In this document: piece after piece, positions 31,202 through 55,390 of the stretch | Position numbering within the stretch: the first letter of the stretch is position 1 | How the letters are laid out: each line of letters starts with the position of its first letter | From: Geosiphon pyriformis uo1 | Taxonomy: Eukaryota; Fungi; Glomeromycota | Assembly (NCBI GenBank): GCA_016748015.1 | Contig: JAAOMT010000512.1 | Coordinates: 902,719 to 966,718 of the forward strand | DNA length: 64,000 bases | Reading direction: 5' to 3' | Made by a program: the position numbers and the translations under genes | Notes under the pieces: model-generated | Told to the model about the DNA's origin: nothing | Seen by the model: the letters and a program-made list of their open reading frames with translations, nothing else | Database searches by the model: none

Positions 31202-33403
31202 TCAATTTGCACGAGGCAGATGGTCTCCCAACCGACGTCCCGTAGATCCCCACCAAAAAACAGGCTGCGGATTTCCACCACTGTTTCTCATGTTTATGCT
31301 GATCACTTTCGTGCTATCAACAGCAATAATACACCATCTTAGTTCACACTCAATATTGGGAACCTTCCCGAAATCATCTATGGTATGATTTTCAATTTCA
31401 AGTGCAATCAATCCTGAAGGGCTCCATGACTCGATATTAGCTGTCAAATTGAATTCTTGATTTGTTGGAGGAAAATGAAAAGAAGCAGAAAGGACAAACC
31501 CGGGAAATAGGGTAATTCCAGAATCAAATCGTGCTATCCATTCTATATCTGGTCCAAGTCTCAGCTTAAGCGTGCCCAGTCTAATAAAGATGAATCGATT
31601 ATCAGGATGAAAATAGCCGAGCTCTTGGGGAATACCTGTCAAGAACCAGATTATATAGTATCTAATATTTAAAAATTTGAAAAAACTCGGTAAATTTTCT
31701 AGTTTTTAATATTAAAGAGAAGGGATCAAATTCTTTAAAATTTACTTTTCATTAATGTTCAACGTTGGATTCTCTTTGCGCTTCTTACCCGTGGTATGAA
31801 TCGTGGCTGAAAATCCGTACTCATTTCTACATTCGAATTTTACGTATGTATCCGGCACCCGAAATCCAGAACTATCCACGAGTGACCCAAAAACTTGATA
31901 ATTGTCAGTTTTCAAAGGCTTCTTGAATTTCATTCGTCGATAAATAACATTGGGGGATTTTAAACGAGTGCATCCTGTCATGAGCACCTTTGGATATTTT
32001 ACAAGTAAATTGTCAAGCTCTTGTCTAATTGTGTCATCAAGAATTTCGTAAATTGGTGCTAATACACGTTTTATAATACACCATTGCCATGGCCTCTTGG
32101 GAATATTTGTAAACCATCTCTCTAGGTGTCTAGAAAAAGGTTAGATCGGAATGAATTTATAATGTAAGAAAATGAAAGCGATTAAATCATACTCTCTGTC
32201 AATGACATCTCCTCCAGAACTAACTAAATAAGAAGCGTTCAAAGGTCTTATTGTATCCTCCCACGTCAAGAAAAGTGGATCACACTTCACAAGTTCATCT
32301 GGAAAATTTCAGGTTTAGTAAGGTGGAAAAATATGAAGTGAAGAGGAAGTAAAAAATTAATGAAAAAATCCTAAAATACCATATATAGTCATTTCTTCTG
32401 ACTCTCTTAACAACCATTCAATCGATCGAGCTCTCTCATTTGAATAGGAATCAATGTTCAAAAAATCGACCTCACATTTTCTTTCCAATTTATTTCCAAG
32501 AATAACTGTTTTACACCACCAATGTCCATACTTTTGAAAAACCTCAGTTAATTGCTCAAAAGGATTATCATCAAGTAATGCACTGGTTATATCACTTTTT
32601 AATCCGTCAGAAGGTATAATATCTGATGGCTCAACCTCAATTAATACTTGCTGACATAAAGCTGAGCAATGAACATAGCCAGCTGGGGATTGATCAAAAA
32701 GAGGATTGAATGAAGGATTTGGCTCAAAGTCCAGGAATGGCTTCAATTTTTCAGGACTGGCTGATTCATTATTGAGTTCAATTCCTTGAGCAGACATGAA
32801 AGAATCTCGTGGTGTTGAAAAGCCATTAAATTCAACGCTTTGCTTGCCAATATACAGAATATTTGTAAGTTTCCCCGAATGATCAGGGTTAAAGTCAAAT
32901 GCAGGTAAAAATGCTTCCTCGACTCCGTATTTAGTAATCACCATTCCATGATTAAGTAAATAATTTGTGTTCAATTCTTTGAAGTCCGTCGAAAAACTTG
33001 ATGTGCATATACTTCGTCGAGGTTGGTTGGCGATAAGGAAAGTATTATCATTATGATCAGAAGCTATTCGAATTATAAGTGCTCGTGAACTCCCCTTTTC
33101 TTTCACATCGTTTGTCACTATTTTTTTCTTTTCTTTTTGATTTTCGAACACTTCAGGTTCATCTAAATGATAGATGACAATATTCGGATCAGATTTTCGT
33201 AATTTTGAAATTGATACGTTTGATGAGTTGGAATGGATAGATGGAACTGCTTTGTGTTGATTCAATCGCCGAACACTTTTATGATGTTCAACATTTTTCT
33301 GTGACCCGATACTTGAAGGTCGACTATGCAATACAGTATCGCTGGGCCATTTCAAAGGTCCGCGAGTATTATCAGTCTCTAAAATTTGTGCCATATTGGA
33401 CAT
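31202..33403 (-). CDS. Standalone MACPF-like domain protein (Glomeromycota family), 4 exons
   Basis: Exons 33403-32380, 32298-32193, 32129-31746 and 31661-31202 join in frame via GT-AG introns. Motifs FQKYGHWWCKTVILGNKL and W...LAPIYEIL; paralogous to the C-half of 44920-49484. Confidence 0.75.
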
Positions 33404-44919: not shown

Positions 44920-47900
44920 TCATTCAAGCGTCCGGAATCCATATACTTTACCAAAATAGCGGGATTTTATAAAGCACCAATGAACGTTGAGATTAAGCGC
45001 TTCATTTTCGGATTCCAAAGAAAACTTTTCACATTCAACACGTCTTTGAATTTCCAAATTTAAACTTTTTGTATCCCAAGATCGATAAGCAATAGAAAAC
45101 TCTGGACTTTTACCTATCATTGGATACCGAAGGTTCAATGCGAGTGAATATTCCATAGCTGCTGATTCGTTTGTTGGTCTGAGTGGTTCTTCAATTGGAA
45201 GGGATATTCGTAGACTGCTTTCTCTAATTTTATACTTTTCGCTGGACTGGCCATGAAAGAATTTGTATTCTCGAAGTTTTGGATTAGAATATCCTATCGT
45301 CGATGGTACTCCGATCAAAAACCAATTAAAATGATATTTCCTAATCGAAGAGACATAATTGCTAGTTTATGAAATCTTGAGGTTTATTGTTCTAAAATGA
45401 TCAACTTTAAATTAAGGTCTCTTACTTTGCATTTTGCTCATCAGAATTCGTGTAATTTTCTAGTCGCCATGAAACTGAAAAGCCAAACTCATCTTGTAAG
45501 GAAAATAGTATTTGGAGACCATGTTCATTTACTGGACCTGATTGAGAGGTGATAGATCCGAAAAGTTGGTATTGAGTGCTTTTCAGCGGGCGCTCAAAAA
45601 GGATCCTTTTGTATTCCTTTTCGATATCGTTCAAGGCTTCTGATCCTTGCATGAGAATTCGCTCTTCTGGCTTACACAAATCGTTGAATCTTTCTTGTTG
45701 ATTCAACTCAAAAAGTTCGTATAGTGGAGCTATTGTTCGATCGATAATTCTCCATTCAGAATCAATTTGAGGCCAGTCTGAAACATTTCTTTTTCAAGCA
45801 ATCATTTTTTAAGACGAATGATGTTATTATCGCTAATTTAAATATGAAATATAAATTAATAAATATTTTCAGCAACAAACCTGATATCGTTTGGATATCC
45901 ATCCAGCGTCATTAAATATGAAGAGTCAAAAGGTACAATTAACGTTTCCCATTTTTTCAGAGCTTCTTTAACTCTGTCATCTCCGTCAACTGTGAAATTT
46001 CCAAAATTTGAATTATAAACAGACCTCGCAAATTTTGATGAGCTAGCCATTAAAAAAATTATTAGAAATACCCTTTTCGAAAGTGAATTCATCTCTATTA
46101 GAGTTCCGATCAGATTTTGCGGGGTTTCGAACGATTCGTCGCAGTTTATCACCGAGCACAAATTTCTTGCACCACCAATGCCCATAAGTCTTAAAAATTT
46201 CATTGAATTCTTCAAATGGATGCATATCATCCAAAGCATCGCCTACTTTTGAAATCAGTTCTGGTGAGACCTCTATATCATTGGGCATCAATGTAAATCT
46301 CGCTTTTTCAAACGAAAATTCACAAAAAACGTCAGAAGTTGGCGATAAATCGAACAGAGGATGATAAAGTTTTTGAGAGTGCAAGTTCGATTGGAATGAC
46401 TCGAATATTTTTATAGGAGAACTTTGGTTGAGGTTCGAGCTTTCTTGTTGTAAGTGACTCGATAACAAAAAAGATTCACTATTATTTGGACTTATGTGAA
46501 GTGCTAATCTTTTTGAGTCATTGAATTCCAATTTTGCCGAACGAATTCTCAATGTTGATTTGGAAGCCTGCAAAATTTTATCAGGCTGGATAACTATGCC
46601 AGTCTCAAGACATGAAAGATTTTCGGATTTCCAAAAATTAGGATGTTTGCAATTTTTGAAAACACTTGATCCGTTTTCCAAACCCATCAGGAATGAGTTC
46701 CAATCATTCAGTGTTTTATTTGTTGACTTGTCGCTTTGATAGACGATATTAGAATCTTTATAATTTGCTTTGCCATCTTTCTTTGTTGAACTTTCAGGAT
46801 GCCTTTGACTAAGGGCTCTTTGAGACTCTTCCTCTGTTAAGTGAAGTTCAATCAATAAAAATAATTAATACCATTATTGAAATAAATTTAATGTGCTTAC
46901 TTATATTAAAAACATTCAAATTTAAATAATAATAAATAATAAGTTTACCATTTGTAGAAAATCCAGATTTTGTTATTAATCGGCTTCTATATCTTGCCAT
47001 ATCTCGTATAGTATCTTGTGTCTCTTCAGATTCAAGGCTTTTTTCACGGATAGGTTGATTTAGGTCACAATTATCGCGAGCAGCAATAACGGTTCGTTGA
47101 AGTTCTTCTGCACTATCACGACAAGACGGATCATATTGCCAATTTTTTTTAATCATTTCCTGAATACATTGAGGCGTATGCTTTTTGATTATAGGGCGCT
47201 GTCCGTTAATCACATCAGATCGCACGTGAATAGGATCTGTATTATTAAGAGGTCTTTCTCCCGAAATAATTTCACAGGAAATGATGGCAAAGCTGTATAT
47301 ATCACTGCACTTAGTGTGAGGATCCCCCTTGCAGATCTCGGGTGCGAGATACTCAAGAACACCATAAATATTACTAGACCGTGGAGAGTAATCGGCACGA
47401 CGACAAAATCCGAGATCAGAAATGACAACTTTTAAGGGGTTTGTTTTCAAAATAAGGATATTTCCAGGATGTAGGTCTCCATGCACTAGCCCTGATTCAT
47501 GTATGAATCTTAGGCCACCAGTGATTTGAAAAAGAATATGAAGGAACACGTCCCAAGTGAAAATATCTTCGTTCAACTTGAGAAAGGCTCTGAGGTCCCC
47601 GTGTTCGGCAAATGGTAAAACCATAACAAATTTATTAGTTGTAATATCTTTTGTGATTCCATAGCATTGAAGGATGTATTTACAAGAGGCACAACGAAGA
47701 TGGGCAATAAGCTATTTCAATGCATTGTCTAGTGTTAGAAAAGAAAAGGGAAGAATAAAAATCAGAAAATTCTATTAAATGAAATTACCTCAATTGAATT
47801 AACGTATTCAATGTTTTGGCTATTATTAAGACATTTCAAAGCAACTCTCGTAACCCCAGTTCTCTCATACTTTTGTTTTTCTCTGTCCCAAAATAAAATT

Positions 47901-49484
47901 TTGCCTCTCTCCCATGTACCTTCTTTAACAACACCAAATCCTCCCGTTCCCACCATTTCCAAAAATTTGATCTCGTCGGGAGAAATCCATTCCAGGCAGC
48001 TTCTACTGCTCTCAGAAATTGACTGTGAATGGTATATATAACTATCAATATTATTATTTTCGCTATTCCATGTTCCCCAAAGGTTTGAAAATCGTGAAGA
48101 TTCACAAGATCTACACCAAAGTGGATCTTTTAATCTGCGATAGCATTCTGGACATTTTGGCAAACCAGCTTCAAATACATTATTATCATTGTTTTCGCTT
48201 TTATCAGTATCACAAAATGCACATATAGGATATCCACTAATGATTGTATACAAGTTACCACATTTAAAACACTTAAATTCATCTGAAAGCTGGTCAAAGA
48301 AAGCTTCAAAATCTAAGAGCTCTCCTTTAGAATTATCCGGACATTTTAATCCTCGACTTTGAAATCGCAAAATGAAATGTTCTAAATTATTTTGATCCTG
48401 TAAAGTGAAGTCAAGGGCATTCAACTCAAGAAAATCACTTTGATAACATAAGTTATTTGCTCCCGCTGCTTTTAAATAGAGTTCAAATGCTTTTTGGATG
48501 TTTTTTGTGGTTCCTCATCCATTTTGATAACACCATCCTAGGTTATATTGTGCATTTTGATTTCCCGCCTCTGCTGTTTTTAAATAGAATTGAAATGTTT
48601 CTTCTAAATTTTTCACTATTTCCCATCCCTTTCGATGATACGTTCCAATACTGTGGACTCGGATTTCCCTCTTTTTCCAGATCTTCCGTTATTTCTAATC
48701 GAGTTCGATGATATACTCTAAGAGCGATTTGTCCAAGTAAATCTCCCGCCTCTGCTGCTTTTGAATAAAGTTCAAATGCTTTTCCCTCGTTTATCGTTGT
48801 TCCTAATCCATCTACATAACAACTTGCAAGATTGTATTTTGCCTCTAAATGTCCCGCCTCTGCTGCTTTTCAATAAAGTTCAAATGCTTTTCCCTCGTTT
48901 ATCGTTGTTCCTAATCCATGTACATAACAACTTGCAAGATTATTTTGTGCATCTAAATGTCCCGCCTCTGCAGCTTTTGAATAAAGTTCAAACGCTTTTT
49001 CTGAATCTTCTGTCGTTCCTCTTCCATTTAAATAACAAAGTGGAAGATTATTTTGTGCATCTAAATTTCTCGCCTCTGCAGCTTTTGAATAAAGTTCAAA
49101 TGCTTTTCCTCGATCTTGTGAAGTACCAATTCCATCAAGATAACAATGACCTGAGAAGAATTGTCCAAAAGAATCTTTTGCATTCGCTGCTTTCTGATAT
49201 TCTAAAAATGCTTTTTTTAAATTAGGAATAGTTCCAATTCCATGTTCTAAAGAAAAGCCGAGCAAAATATGGTCTATTGAATGCTTTGAATTTTTATTTT
49301 TCAAATGATTGAATAAGTCTTCAGGTTTTTTCTGATTGCGTTCAAGATATTTTTTCACTAATTCAGCAACTTTTGAATATTTTCCAACTGGAAAAAAGGC
49401 TAAACTTTCTTTGAAGACAAACAATGTTCCTTCAAGCCAGTCGAGGAGTGGAGTTGCATTTTCAATTGATGAAGTTGAAGACAT
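44920..49484 (-). pseudogene. Sel1 repeats - Cys-rich linker - tyrosine-kinase-like kinase - MACPF-like domain fusion; lesions confined to the Sel1 array
   Basis: Exons 49484-47789, 47711-46949, 46833-46072, 45989-45881, 45788-45426 and 45340-44920 splice in frame. Motifs KAFELYSKAAEAG repeats, GTGGFG, VALK, HGDLHPGN, DLG, APE, FKTYGHWWCKKFVLGDKL. Stops at 48870-72 and 48515-17 plus a frameshift between them. Confidence 0.8.
48430..49300 (-). repeat. Sel1-like repeat array (108-bp units)
   Basis: Near-identical DNA units start at ~48764 and ~48872 (AATAAAGTTCAAATGCTTTTCCCTCGTTTATCGTTGTTCCTAATCCAT), with further units at ~48980 and ~49088. Confidence 0.9.
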
Positions 49485-51899
49485 GATTTGAATATTTTGT
49501 ATGGGTAAAGAAGGATTTTTAAAGAGTTCGTCTTGGTAATAAATAAGGATTTCAATCTATAATCACATTCTCGAAAAGGTTAGGGTTCAAAAATAGACGC
49601 TTACTTTATTCGCTCATTTATCTGGAACTGTTAAAAGGGATCATTCTTTTATTGCTATTGTTAAATGAAAACACTTTTGATTGGTGATTGCTGGTTTCAA
49701 TAGCTCATTGATAAATTTCTAAATGCATAAGGTTGCAGAGGCCCTAGCTGCTTCCAAAAATATTTTTAATAAAAAGTAGATCACTCTTACAGGAATTAAG
49801 GTCCTCAGTTGAATAAATTTATATTGTATTTCAACGAGTCGATAAAACCGACTTAATTGAAGCATTATTTAGAGATGCAAGATTTAGTTTTTCATGTTCT
49901 TTTAAATTAAACTCTAATGATATCAGAATTCATTTTTTGCTTTAGCTTAATAGATCATTTTTATTTAACAGAGTTTATATAATAACCAAACACTCGATTT
50001 CCAAAAATATAAAATTTATATGAAAATAAATTTTACTTAATATATTTCAATTTAATAAACATAATTTTGCATCATTACCAATTAATCAATTGTTTATTTT
50101 AATTATTGATTTCTTTTTCACTTTCCAGAAAATAGATCAATTAATCAATGCACTTTTCTTTAGAAAATTTTTACTTTGTTAAAATCTATTTCTTTTAATT
50201 ATGTATTAATTAAAAACACAAAAATATTCAAATATTTAAATAATAAACAATTAATAGATTTAAAATCTAAACACTTTTAAACTTTTTCAGCAATATCAGA
50301 TGGAATAAAAAAAATATTCATCACAAAAAATTGATTTTGAAACTGGAATTTTGCATGTTAAAAATTAGATTATTAAGTTTTATTTTGGTACCAAAGTTGT
50401 GCATAAAATATTAAAATTTCAAATACAAGTTGAAAAATTTTTGTTATTTTCACTGTGTTATAGGCTGATATCTGTTGAAAATTAGATTTTGAAAACAATT
50501 CAAATTAATATCTGATTAGATTAATATTCAGATAAATTTATAATTTCAAATATTAAAAATCAAATTCAAACATTTATTTAAATTATATTTAATCTTTCAG
50601 AAAACCAATGTTAAAAATAAAAATAAATTTCAAAAATAAAAAATTAGAAGCAATTGTCGCTTTTTAAGACTATGTGTTGGTTTGTTATTTTTAAAATTTA
50701 TAGTTAAATTTTATATATGTATATAATAGATATACTAATTTATGAAACATTAAAAATAGTTCACTCTAATTCAGTAACCCACTTTATATAATTAAACTTT
50801 TATTAATTCAAAAAATTTTTTATATTTTTTTATATTTTTTGTTAATTCAAGTCAATTTTTAATTCTGTATTAGTGTAAAAAGTAATCTACATTATTAATA
50901 TAAATTTTTTTAAATTTAATAGATTTTTTCTTTAATAAAATATTTCATTCAATTAAAATAATTAAAAAACATAGTTATGTATGTTTTTTTTAATGCACAA
51001 GGACAAATACACGAAAGTGATACAATGTAGGAATTTTAAGTTTTACATATAAAAATGCAAGGTAAAATAATTTTATAATTAAAATCTATTTGTTTAATAT
51101 TTTTGTTTGAGCATTTTTATCAAATATATAAAATAATATTTGTGTTTTAAATAAATTTTGATATGTTAAAAATGTTTTAAAGCTATTCAGTATTTTACAT
51201 TATTAATCAAAGTATTAAAACTAATAAAATAAAAATAATTACTTTATAACATATTTTTAAATATTTTTTCGAATAAAATTAAAAAAAAACAACTTAATAT
51301 AAATTTTCAATAGATTATTTATATACTAGATTTATGTTTGTAAATAGAAGATATTACTTTTGTTTAAAAAAATAATGAAAATTATTAAAATTATTATAGA
51401 ATTATCTGAAATATTATATTAGTTGATGATATTTTGCAATTTTAGGCTAAAAGTGTCAATTAGTTTAGACTTGAAACATTCCCTCATGTAAATTGTTTGA
51501 ACGGGTAGAGATCGTCCGGGATTTTAGACTGAAAGTTCTGAAAACACACATTCCCTTGATCCGGAACTCAAACATGAGATTTTTTCGCGTACCAATCTAA
51601 ATGAATTCTAAGGTTACAGATGGCCTTAACCGCTTCCAAAAATTATTTCTTTATATCAAAGAAACAAAGGACAAATATCCTTAATTAGTGATAGCCTTCA
51701 TAACAGGTTTAAAGTAATTCCTTGACTCATATATAGCAGAAGAAAATTTATTTTAGCTACTACATTAAAAAAATACGATTACAGTTTCTATCAAGATTTT
51801 TTAATGAAAAGTTAATGAGATTGAACTGATTAATTATATTATTTAATTAATTAAATAACTATTTTAAAAATAAAAGTTAATAATTAAATTATATTAAAA

Positions 51900-53068: not shown

Positions 53069-55390
53069 ATGACGAATGTTTCTGAGCTTGAAGTTGAGGT
53101 TCAAGTTAATAATGAAATACCAGTGCTTTGCAAGTTGGAGTCAGATGCAAAATTGTGCAAAGTTCGAGAGAATTTTAATAAAAACAATAATATTCTTATG
53201 GGTGAAGAAATGTTCTTCATGAAGGGTAGTGCTAGGGTACAAAAGAAAGATGAGGGGGGCAAGGATGTCCAAGAAATTATTAAGGAAAGCACTTTGAAAA
53301 TTACGGGCTCGAGAGCACCAGACTGGGATTTCATAATAAACAGTTTAAAATTCGAGTATGGAATCAACTTTTTGAAGGAAGGGGCCTGTCGAGCTACCAA
53401 TAAGGCATTTAAATTCAAAAAAATTCCAAGTAAGCCTTTAGCTCAACCGGAAATACTCGAAGAAACGGTTACATGTAAAAATCAAAGTGACAAATTTGTT
53501 ATGAAAAATTTCCTTAATGAAGTAAATATAGAAGCAAGTCTACCATGGTAAGAGTACAATTTAAAAGATCTTGAAAATTTTTAACAAGCACAGTCTGAAT
53601 TTTGAGAACTTTTTCGAACATTAACCATTCTTTTTAAGGTCCTCCACATCGTTAGGTTTGGGAGTTTCCATTGATTCTAAAAAAGAAGTCCACCAAACCG
53701 TTGCAAAGTCCGAAACATTTTCCATTTCAAAAAGAATCCACTCATTTATTGATATGTCTGAAGATGAGGTCGAACCAACACCTGAATTTGTATCAGCTGT
53801 GGAAAAAGCTTTTATTGGTGAAAACAAAAAGAAGAACCTGGAAGATGTCCTAAAGGACTTTGGTCCATATTGGTGTAAAAGGATTGCCCTTGGGGGCAAG
53901 TTAATAACAGAAGAAAAAAAAGAGCAAAAGGTTGAAGGACAAAATAAAGGCAAAGAAACCCTTCTAAAAGGGAGTATGAAGGTGGGAGGGTCTAACATAG
54001 GCGCAGAGTCTGGGCCTTCTAAAACCACAACAAATTCAAATTCTTCATCTGAAGAAAGCCTTCGTTATTGGATGTATGGCGGTGAGGAAAGAAATTATCA
54101 AGAAAGTGGAATGAAGGGTAAATGACTTGGGGAAAATTTTCCATAATTTTGATAAAACATGATTATAATATATTTATTTAAAGTATATCATTAATTTTTA
54201 GGTTGGCTCAATTCGATTTATGAACCTAAAAATTGGTCGGCAGTACAATATGACAATGTCCACTGCATTTTCGAACTCTTGCCCGAGGAAACACATAATA
54301 GAATTAGGGAAGCTTTTGAAAAACGAATCGAATCTTCACGTGTTGAATCTATCGAATTTAAAATGGATTTATCCGTGGCGAATTATATTCATGAGCTGCC
54401 TAAAGATGTAAAAATATCAAAAGATCATCAAGTTTTTGTAACAGTAATGAACGAAAAACTCTCCGACTCAGACTTTGCCCCCAGGGTTCATTATCATGAC
54501 GAGAATAGTAGACCAGTCATTCAGCTTTATAGACTGGGCAAACTTGAAAAAGGGCGAAAATATAAAAAGTTCTCGCTAAAGCTTGGGTGGATAGTTTTGG
54601 GAACTTCAAATATGGTGGATTTGATTAATTCAAATCAATCCACACTGTTTATTAAATCTGCAGAGGAGACAATCACTAATAATCGGGCAGAAATTCTCTA
54701 TATTCCTGATCCTAATGATAGTCTTATCGTAACTTGTGTGTCCCGTTCTAAGGACAATCAAAATAATCCCAGAGATTGCTCTGTTGTAACAGGAACTCAT
54801 TTCGTGTACAACAATAAAAAAATGGAAGCCTGTACTTTTTGTTATGACCTCAAAAACTTTTCTTTGAATACAGTGAATCTTGATATTTATAATTTTGCCC
54901 TCGATAACAGCAAACCAAGTTGCTGATGTTTCCAAAATGCCTATGAATGTCTCAGTCAATTATAGGTAATGTTTTTCTTATTCAGAAACTTAGTGAAATT
55001 GGGCTAATTTTTTTTAAAATTCTTTTTTCATATCGTAGCACTATCAGACGTAATGGTAACGGTAAGAGCGATTCTCAATTTGGGCACACAGAAATTAGCA
55101 AGGGGGTACTAGGAAAACTAATACCCAATAGACTAATTCCCAATGCACTACGATTTGAAGTGTCGTTTGATGAATATAAAAATTTGTTGAAAAAACCCGT
55201 AATGTTTCAACCAATTTTCATCAGTCTCATCTTTATGGACTGTGTGTGTGGAGATAACTGTGCGCCTGGTTTCTTCAGCATCAATCCAAAAAGTGCAATT
55301 TATCGATCATTGAAGAAATGTTCTCTCAGTAGTGGGAAAATAGCCTATTTTTGTCCCTCAACCAATAGTCAATTGGAAAGTGAAAGTTGA
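53069..55390 (+). CDS. Ubiquitin-like N-terminus plus MACPF-like domain protein, multi-exon
   Basis: Exons 53069-53547, 53639-54117, 54202-~54965 and 55039-55390. Motifs VEPTPEFVSAVEKA, LKDFGPYWCKRIALGGKL, MYGGE, WLNSIYEPKNW...CIFELL. Frame junction near 54870-54925 unresolved. Confidence 0.75.

Follow-up and report, generated by a model that had tools for sequence, protein, structure and literature searches.

The AT-rich 64,000-nucleotide (nt) stretch of the Geosiphon pyriformis uo1 genome analyzed here (contig JAAOMT010000512.1, positions 902,719 to 966,718, forward strand; hereafter the window) carries on its minus strand, from 49484 to 44920, a six-exon gene that we named gene A, in which a Sel1 repeat array, a cysteine-rich linker and a protein kinase precede a MACPF-type module. 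Judging from its sequence, we read the locus, with a probability of about 0.5, as a spliced, young and decaying Sel1-kinase/MACPF chimera and not as a working single-chain receptor. According to this model, a recent copy of a Sel1-array/double-CxxC/kinase gene (~49583-46851) would have come to lie directly upstream of an old pleurotolysin-B-like gene (46833-44920), probably inside what was once the 5′ coding region of that gene; upon loss of the terminal exon of the kinase copy, its conserved splice donor would join the MACPF frame via a 115 nt GT-AG intron. An initial annotation of this DNA had proposed an intact chain of Sel1 repeats, CxxC linker, kinase and MACPF-like domain, which does not hold, as the Sel1 array contains two TGA stops and a frameshifting loss of 35 nt.

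Results

Exon structure of gene A and the lesions in its Sel1 array

The six exons are read from three frames of the minus strand, and all introns are of the GT-AG type (77, 115, 82, 92 and 85 nt; Table 1). Exons 2-6 join in frame, including the junction between the kinase and MACPF parts, where the last base of exon 2 (46949) and the first two of exon 3 (46833-46832) form a GAG codon through which the frame continues. The expectation that all six exons splice in frame therefore stands for exons 2-6 and fails for exon 1. Of two candidate acceptors for intron 4, the one at 45779/45778 breaks the frame and was rejected; the one at 45790/45789 keeps the frame and agrees with the annotated model of a paralogue in the same window, gene B.

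Table 1 Features of gene A (window coordinates). Family HMM, hidden Markov model built from 62 relatives of the MACPF-like module; E, expect value.
Feature	Position	Strand	Description
Exon 1	49484-47789	-	not one open frame
Sel1 array, first part	48873..49484	-	204 codons in frame 1, starting at ATG 49484 and ending just ahead of the first stop; 4 Pfam Sel1 repeats, E 4.5e-30; 108 nt register
First in-frame TGA	48870..48872	-	within a Sel1 repeat, frame 1
Degenerate Sel1 repeats with frameshift	48518..48869	-	one unit of 73 nt versus 108 nt; 35 nt missing at ~48700-48640; frame 1 to frame 2
Second in-frame TGA	48515..48517	-	within a Sel1 repeat, frame 2
Cys-rich linker, four CxxC	47987..48424	-	two C-x2-C...C-x2-C pairs; 8 Cys invariant in 12 copies
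Kinase N-lobe, end of exon 1	47789..47986	-	G-loop, VALK; frame 2
Intron 1	47712..47788	-	77 nt, GT-AG, phase 0
Exon 2	46949..47711	-	kinase C-lobe (HGDLHPGN, DLG, APE) and tail; PF07714 E 2.1e-33; 96.4% DNA identity to paralogue L015
Intron 2	46834..46948	-	115 nt; kinase-to-MACPF junction; family-wide conserved donor; kinase-family homology to ~46851; terminal coding exon of the family missing
Exon 3	46072..46833	-	73-codon spacer, then first half of the MACPF domain (core from ~46615; YGHWW..LGD motif); family HMM positions 10-178, E 8.4e-37
Exon 4	45881..45989	-	MACPF domain, region of the second helix cluster; same exon in the annotated paralogue P0001 (gene B); family HMM positions 182-211, E 1.5e-6
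Exon 5	45426..45788	-	end of the MACPF domain and first beta-sandwich domain; family HMM positions 218-340, E 5.6e-29
Exon 6	44920..45340	-	second beta-sandwich domain; stop TGA 44922-44920; family HMM positions 338-466, E 2e-19

The Sel1 repeats named in the initial annotation are present: besides the first part of the array (49484-48873), which matches PF08238, the broken stretch still scores in two pieces, one in frame 1 (E 6.5e-9) and one in frame 2 (E 3e-6). The repeat anchors are spaced by 108 nt up to 48779 and the next anchor, at 48598, follows only after 181 nt, indicating that one Sel1 unit is short by 35 nt and that the coding signal has shifted to frame 2. The CxxC linker and the kinase lie in frame 2 and are thus out of frame with ATG 49484, and the first in-frame ATG past the last stop, 47956, is situated at the kinase G-loop. 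Translation from ATG 49484 is therefore predicted to stop after 204 residues, and as the assembled sequence reads, the Sel1 sensor array is uncoupled from the kinase and the pore-former; given two stops and a frameshift, a one-chain protein is not makeable at this locus. Removal of the damaged stretch as an intron was considered and rejected, because such an intron would need at least 360 nt, compared with 77-115 nt for the real ones, and the stretch is recognizable Sel1-coding sequence. As the interrupted pieces still score as Sel1, we regard the interruptions as lesions and not as introns. A continuous first exon comprising the Sel1 array, the linker with its eight cysteines and the kinase N-lobe is a family trait that is broken in gene A: in the closest paralogue the same region is open over 1057 codons, and the open frames of the paralogues extend over 1000-1400 codons.

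The C-terminal module is a MACPF relative

Pfam and other searches of gene A were performed exon by exon, and the fold was predicted on the intact annotated paralogue B. Exons 3-6 gave no Pfam match at E ≤ 1. Scanned in six frames with PF22693, the genome yielded only a further MACPF-like gene of the window, gene C, and one fragment, both below the cut-off; gene A does not reach the gathering score. A word search with exon 3 alone, using a length window that shuts out long relatives, returned no match. A language-model (ESM) feature search with exon 3 pointed to the MACPF and thiol-cytolysin clusters (0.93).

A profile of the exon 3 cores of genes A and B, searched against 1.84 billion proteins, retrieved 171 relatives. 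Taxonomy was looked up for 20 representatives, 19 of which belong to the Glomeromycota and one of which is a metagenome protein; the genera are Gigaspora, Dentiscutata, Racocetra, Rhizophagus, Entrophospora, Ambispora and Funneliformis. Two of the relatives, P0002 (E 2.2e-30) and P0004 (E 2.3e-16), pass PF22693 with 50.0 and 59.2 bits, respectively (cut-off 27.5), and this model, MACPF_1 or ‘Fungal MACPF-like domain’, is passed by several of the relatives that were scanned. The conserved unit spans ~500 amino acids (aa), and the family HMM, which was built from 62 sequences without B, matches the four exons of the gene A module collinearly (Table 1). With a 63-sequence family profile, the entire MACPF domain of Pleurotus ostreatus pleurotolysin B (PlyB) was aligned (profile positions 4-262, PlyB residues 18-297; E 1.4e-13).

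The AlphaFold2 model of the B module (P0001:140-657), calculated with the family alignment, reached a predicted local distance difference test (pLDDT) score of 89 and a predicted template modelling (pTM) score of 0.87, and displays the MACPF fold with a bent central beta-sheet and two flanking helix clusters. At E ≤ 0.001, the listed Foldseek matches of this model are MACPF proteins throughout, led by PlyB (7.7e-13), and for model residues 1-282 VIA-align gave Z scores of 15.1 for PlyB, 11.3 for perforin-2 and 10.9 for perforin. At the site of the signature Y/W-G-T/S-H-F/Y-x6-G-G, gene A reads Y-G-H-W-W-x6-G-D and PlyB Y-G-H-V-F-x6-G-G; spacing, Y-G and the first glycine are kept, and the second glycine, an aspartate in gene A, is variable in the family. 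On the basis of the intermediate relatives, the profile and the fold of B, the C-terminal module of gene A is a true MACPF relative, and this element of the initial annotation is confirmed.

Two beta-sandwich domains follow the MACPF domain in B (P0001:422-657; model residues 283-378 and 391-484), and judging from the model they may be carbohydrate- or target-binding parts. Residues 283-378 resemble a discoidin C-terminal lectin domain (Z 6.6) and residues 391-484 phage tailspike and R-pyocin fibre tips (Z 7.5); both similarities are leads that possibly reflect only a shared arrangement. In relatives, part of the beta-sandwich region is assigned to DUF7431 by Pfam.

The kinase block is young and its junction with the module probably recent

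The four CxxC motifs of the initial annotation were found, and all eight cysteines are invariant across 12 genomic copies. Pfam gave only weak zinc-finger matches for the linker, and an AlphaFold2 prediction with 12 paralogues was unusable (pLDDT 43). The kinase retains its catalytic motifs as annotated, with GTGGFG, VALK, HGDLHPGN, DLG and APE read directly from the sequence, and exon 2 scores better with the Tyr/Ser-Thr model PF07714 (PK_Tyr_Ser-Thr; Table 1) than with PF00069 (Pkinase, E 2.7e-30). The best solved relatives of this putatively tyrosine kinase-like (TKL) kinase are mixed, with PknA followed by TAK1 and RIPK4, which are TKL kinases, IKK-beta and DAPK.

Linker and N-lobe together match the genome at 157 or more sites, many of which contain in-frame stops, and the linker and N-lobe of gene A are 64-97% identical to those of its paralogues. 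Over the whole kinase block, from ~46917 to 49583, the DNA identity to paralogues is 82-96%. The closest paralogue, L015 (G000:C653:792000-801999), shares 96% DNA identity in the kinase C-lobe and 97% protein identity in the linker. L015 is itself rearranged: ~250 nt are missing around the N-lobe and intron, and there is a 1 nt gap in the C-lobe. Between the two C-lobes we counted 12 non-synonymous and 2 synonymous changes, numbers with too little power to judge selection.

The splice donor after the kinase is kept in 11/11 paralogues examined, in which a short intron follows and the coding sequence closes with an exon of between a few and ~20 codons. Gene A has lost this terminal exon; homology to the family reappears over 46906-46851 and goes no further. 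Owing to this loss, the family donor faces the acceptor at 46835-46834, which opens in frame into the MACPF-like frame. A module-profile search of the whole genome revealed no other kinase copy with a MACPF tail, and the closest relatives of the gene A module are stand-alone proteins. A young kinase block next to an old module whose nearest relatives stand alone suggests a recent, Geosiphon-specific juxtaposition instead of an inherited fusion; from sequence comparison, the junction looks independent of the fusions found in Glomeromycotina.

The kinase and Sel1 families of Rhizophagus irregularis have been described as high-copy ‘class C’ genes that show higher CG methylation than core genes and a preference for gene-sparse regions (Dallaire et al. 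2021 preprint, 10.1101/2021.03.30.436303). The Geosiphon Sel1/kinase family is similar to these class C families of arbuscular mycorrhizal fungi in its high copy number, its repeat-like behaviour and its many broken copies. Its members end a few codons after one intron past the kinase, whereas only gene A runs into a MACPF-like frame.

Alternative readings of the locus

Several observations weigh against a decaying chimera. Pfam's own MACPF models miss the exons of gene A when applied directly, and they do not reach B either. The three lesions are all confined to the first 970 nt of a coding length of 4114 nt (P ~0.013 if lesions were distributed uniformly), with more than 1000 codons downstream of them and all splice sites intact; this clustering could reflect either a more mutable repeat array or ongoing selection on the downstream parts, and in the latter case the kinase, the MACPF part or both may be maintained instead of decaying. 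Furthermore, the lesions are read from the assembly, where an error in a repeat array is conceivable though improbable, splicing across 46949/46833 is predicted from genomic sequence only, and an in-frame junction has a prior of ~1 in 3.

The alternative that survives best, possible but clearly the less probable explanation, is that the locus consists of two units, a dead Sel1-kinase pseudogene ending at the stop 46850-46848 and a still working stand-alone MACPF-like gene made up of exons 3-6, with ATG 46687 as its start. This ATG, the first in exon 3, precedes the family core by 25 codons; in many relatives, the distance from start to core is 0-60 residues. The stand-alone state of the closest relatives and of genes B and C in the window fits this explanation too, as do the contrasts between a recent kinase block and an old MACPF part, and between a broken Sel1 array and a MACPF part that is fully open with conserved splice sites. 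The sequence around the junction argues for a fused frame instead. The 48 codons from the acceptor to ATG 46687 are open, which was the case in only 2.6% of shuffles; the kinase block ends at ~46851, just ~165 nt upstream of this ATG, leaving almost no room for a promoter; and the donor, conserved across the family, pairs in frame with a good acceptor that has a branch-like site (CTTAAC). In the public protein sets, moreover, no annotated protein covers the module of gene A. In favour of the predicted fused frame are thus the conserved donor, the good acceptor, the in-frame join, the open codons and the scant promoter space.

We consider it unlikely that gene A is a working kinase-MACPF fusion without a sensor, in which the Sel1 array is dead and a product, made for instance from an internal start, is kept by selection. 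Such a fusion would account for the restriction of the lesions to the Sel1 array (at the probability given above), for the open linker, kinase, junction and four MACPF exons, and for the intact catalytic motifs, and kinase-MACPF_1 without Sel1 is the commonest fused form among the relatives. Yet there is no in-frame ATG from 48515 to 47956, so that the product would start at the G-loop and lack the strand before it and the whole linker, and the 12:2 ratio of changes in the C-lobe gives no sign of constraint, albeit at low power. The intact single chain of the initial annotation, with the lesions explained as assembly errors or as spliced out, is highly unlikely: all other parts of the model hold and three-domain proteins exist in relatives, but two separate nonsense codons and a 35 nt loss, none of the homopolymer type, would have to be explained, an intron removing them would delete recognizable Sel1 coding sequence at a length beyond that of any real intron here, and many other family copies in the genome are likewise broken.

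Other MACPF-like genes in Geosiphon

Paralogue B (window 31205-33403, minus strand) consists of four exons, corresponding in structure to exons 3-6 of gene A, and encodes 657 aa identical to G. pyriformis KAG9293806.1, a ‘hypothetical protein’. It is a stand-alone gene with no kinase upstream, and the module of gene A is 23-36% identical to it. A word search with the B module retrieved only B itself. Gene C (window 53069-54926, plus strand), a third, more divergent and likewise stand-alone MACPF-like gene, is located 3.6 kb upstream of gene A and faces away from it; it contains a FGPYWCKRIALGG motif and matches PF22693 with E 4.2e-5, below the cut-off, and DUF7431 with E 9.6e-8, above the cut-off. 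Together, genes A, B and C form a three-gene MACPF-like cluster in the window. Genome-wide, the module profile detected only these three genes and one broken fragment. The fragment lies outside the window (G000:C714:679613-680158, plus strand), is interrupted by TAG and TAA stops and matches positions 96-242 of the family profile (E 2.9e-12).

Kinase-MACPF fusions in other Glomeromycota

Using the C-lobe of gene A as query, we detected a kinase in 20 of the best 150 family representatives; the 16 fused proteins with a near-full module all have the kinase on its N-terminal side. Intact kinase-MACPF_1 proteins were found in other Glomeromycota, and the physical coupling of a kinase, often with Sel1 repeats, to a MACPF-type pore-former, which the initial annotation had claimed for gene A, is true of the annotated relatives CAB4426653.1 of R. 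irregularis (kinase+Sel1+MACPF_1), CAG8677373.1 of Gigaspora margarita (kinase+MACPF_1+Sel1) and GES80298.1 of Rhizophagus clarus. In the latter, the kinase C-lobe and the whole module are encoded in one uninterrupted 873-codon open reading frame (L017:2711-5332), making this fusion independent of splice prediction. A further relative, P0139, combines thirteen Sel1 repeats with MACPF_1.

At the R. clarus locus (L017, BLAL01000048.1:370988-378319), a 668 aa DUF7431 gene of the module family adjoins the fusion gene and faces away from it; module genes thus cluster with fused ones in R. clarus too. We also noticed that P0008 (G. margarita CAG8495097.1) and P0123, a JGI metagenome protein with a second kinase domain, combine kinase and MACPF-like module with weak or faint C-terminal MLKL_N-like matches, and that P0002 (Dentiscutata erythropus CAG8556509.1, 1674 aa) is predicted to carry three tandem MACPF-like modules of ~500 aa in one chain. 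A full-text literature search (MACPF with Rhizophagus, arbuscular mycorrhizal or Glomeromycota; kinase domain with pleurotolysin) retrieved no paper on this architecture. The kinase-MACPF_1 architecture is therefore visible in databases and unstudied in the literature searched, and gene A is a broken new member.

Discussion

The best match of the module in both sequence and fold is PlyB (PDB 4oej, 4v2t, 9do6), the MACPF part of the two-component pleurotolysin. The two share the register of the signature, YGH-aromatic-aromatic-x6-G, and a beta-rich C-terminal part, but their identity is only 12-19%, and the second residue of the GG pair is an aspartate in gene A. The C-terminal domains of the module resemble lectin and fibre-tip sandwiches (Z 6.6-7.5, leads only), whereas PlyB has a trefoil, and unlike PlyB the module of gene A is preceded by a kinase. 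An aegerolysin partner (PF06355) was not matched in the genome, a weak negative, as the control genomes were silent too.

Compared with the kinase fusions recognized by PF22693 (G. margarita KAF0418301.1, R. clarus GES80298.1, R. irregularis CAB4378635.1 and CAB4426653.1), gene A has the same ~500 aa module and the same N-terminal position of the kinase, and Sel1 repeats are present in some of these fusions as well. It differs in the spacer between kinase and module, ~130 aa as opposed to 230-490 aa in the Glomeromycotina fusions, in a kinase that stems from the Geosiphon family with N-terminal Sel1 repeats and was joined recently, and in exons that fall below the Pfam threshold. A functional analogy may be drawn with MLKL, in which a kinase-type domain is likewise linked to a membrane-permeabilizing module. 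The effector of MLKL is a four-helix bundle, whereas here it is an unrelated, C-terminal MACPF beta-barrel former, and the kinase keeps its catalytic residues.

If it behaves like PlyB and other MACPF proteins, the module would oligomerize, its two helix clusters unfurling to form a beta-barrel; the C-terminal beta-sandwiches would be the likely targeting part, picking the target membrane or glycan. The N-termini of B and of the possible stand-alone start of gene A are hydrophilic, and no signal peptide was seen by eye in them or in the relatives, which makes an action in the cytosol plausible. On the most parsimonious model for the intact fused relatives, sensor- or kinase-driven clustering, phosphorylation or release of autoinhibition would license the MACPF oligomer. 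We infer from the analogy with MLKL that these cytosolic kinase-MACPF proteins might act as regulated, membrane-perforating effectors of the cell-death type. The ligand-controlled, phosphorylation-gated pore formation that the initial annotation had envisaged is pure inference.

Taken alone, the locus is most likely a broken copy and carries little weight; its worth lies in pointing to a class. A PlyB-like MACPF module with two beta-sandwich domains is widespread in the Glomeromycota, and about one in eight family representatives is fused behind a kinase. To our knowledge, no function has been assigned to the huge kinase and Sel1 families of these fungi. The Geosiphon chimera would illustrate a simple route to fusion: once its terminal exon is lost, a gene can splice from a conserved donor into the gene that follows. 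A broader proposal, which we regard as speculative and rather unlikely in its entirety, is that cytosolic MACPF pore-formers coupled to kinases, in part with Sel1 sensor arrays, form an as yet unstudied class in the Glomeromycota that would serve as regulated executioners of cell death or membrane attack and constitute a perforin-fold counterpart of MLKL and gasdermin; the Geosiphon locus would then be an independent, recent re-invention by exon loss of a repeatedly favoured combination, and its remainder may be expressed. If these proteins are regulated intracellular pore-formers, a perforin-fold executioner would be added to fungal immunity and cell death.

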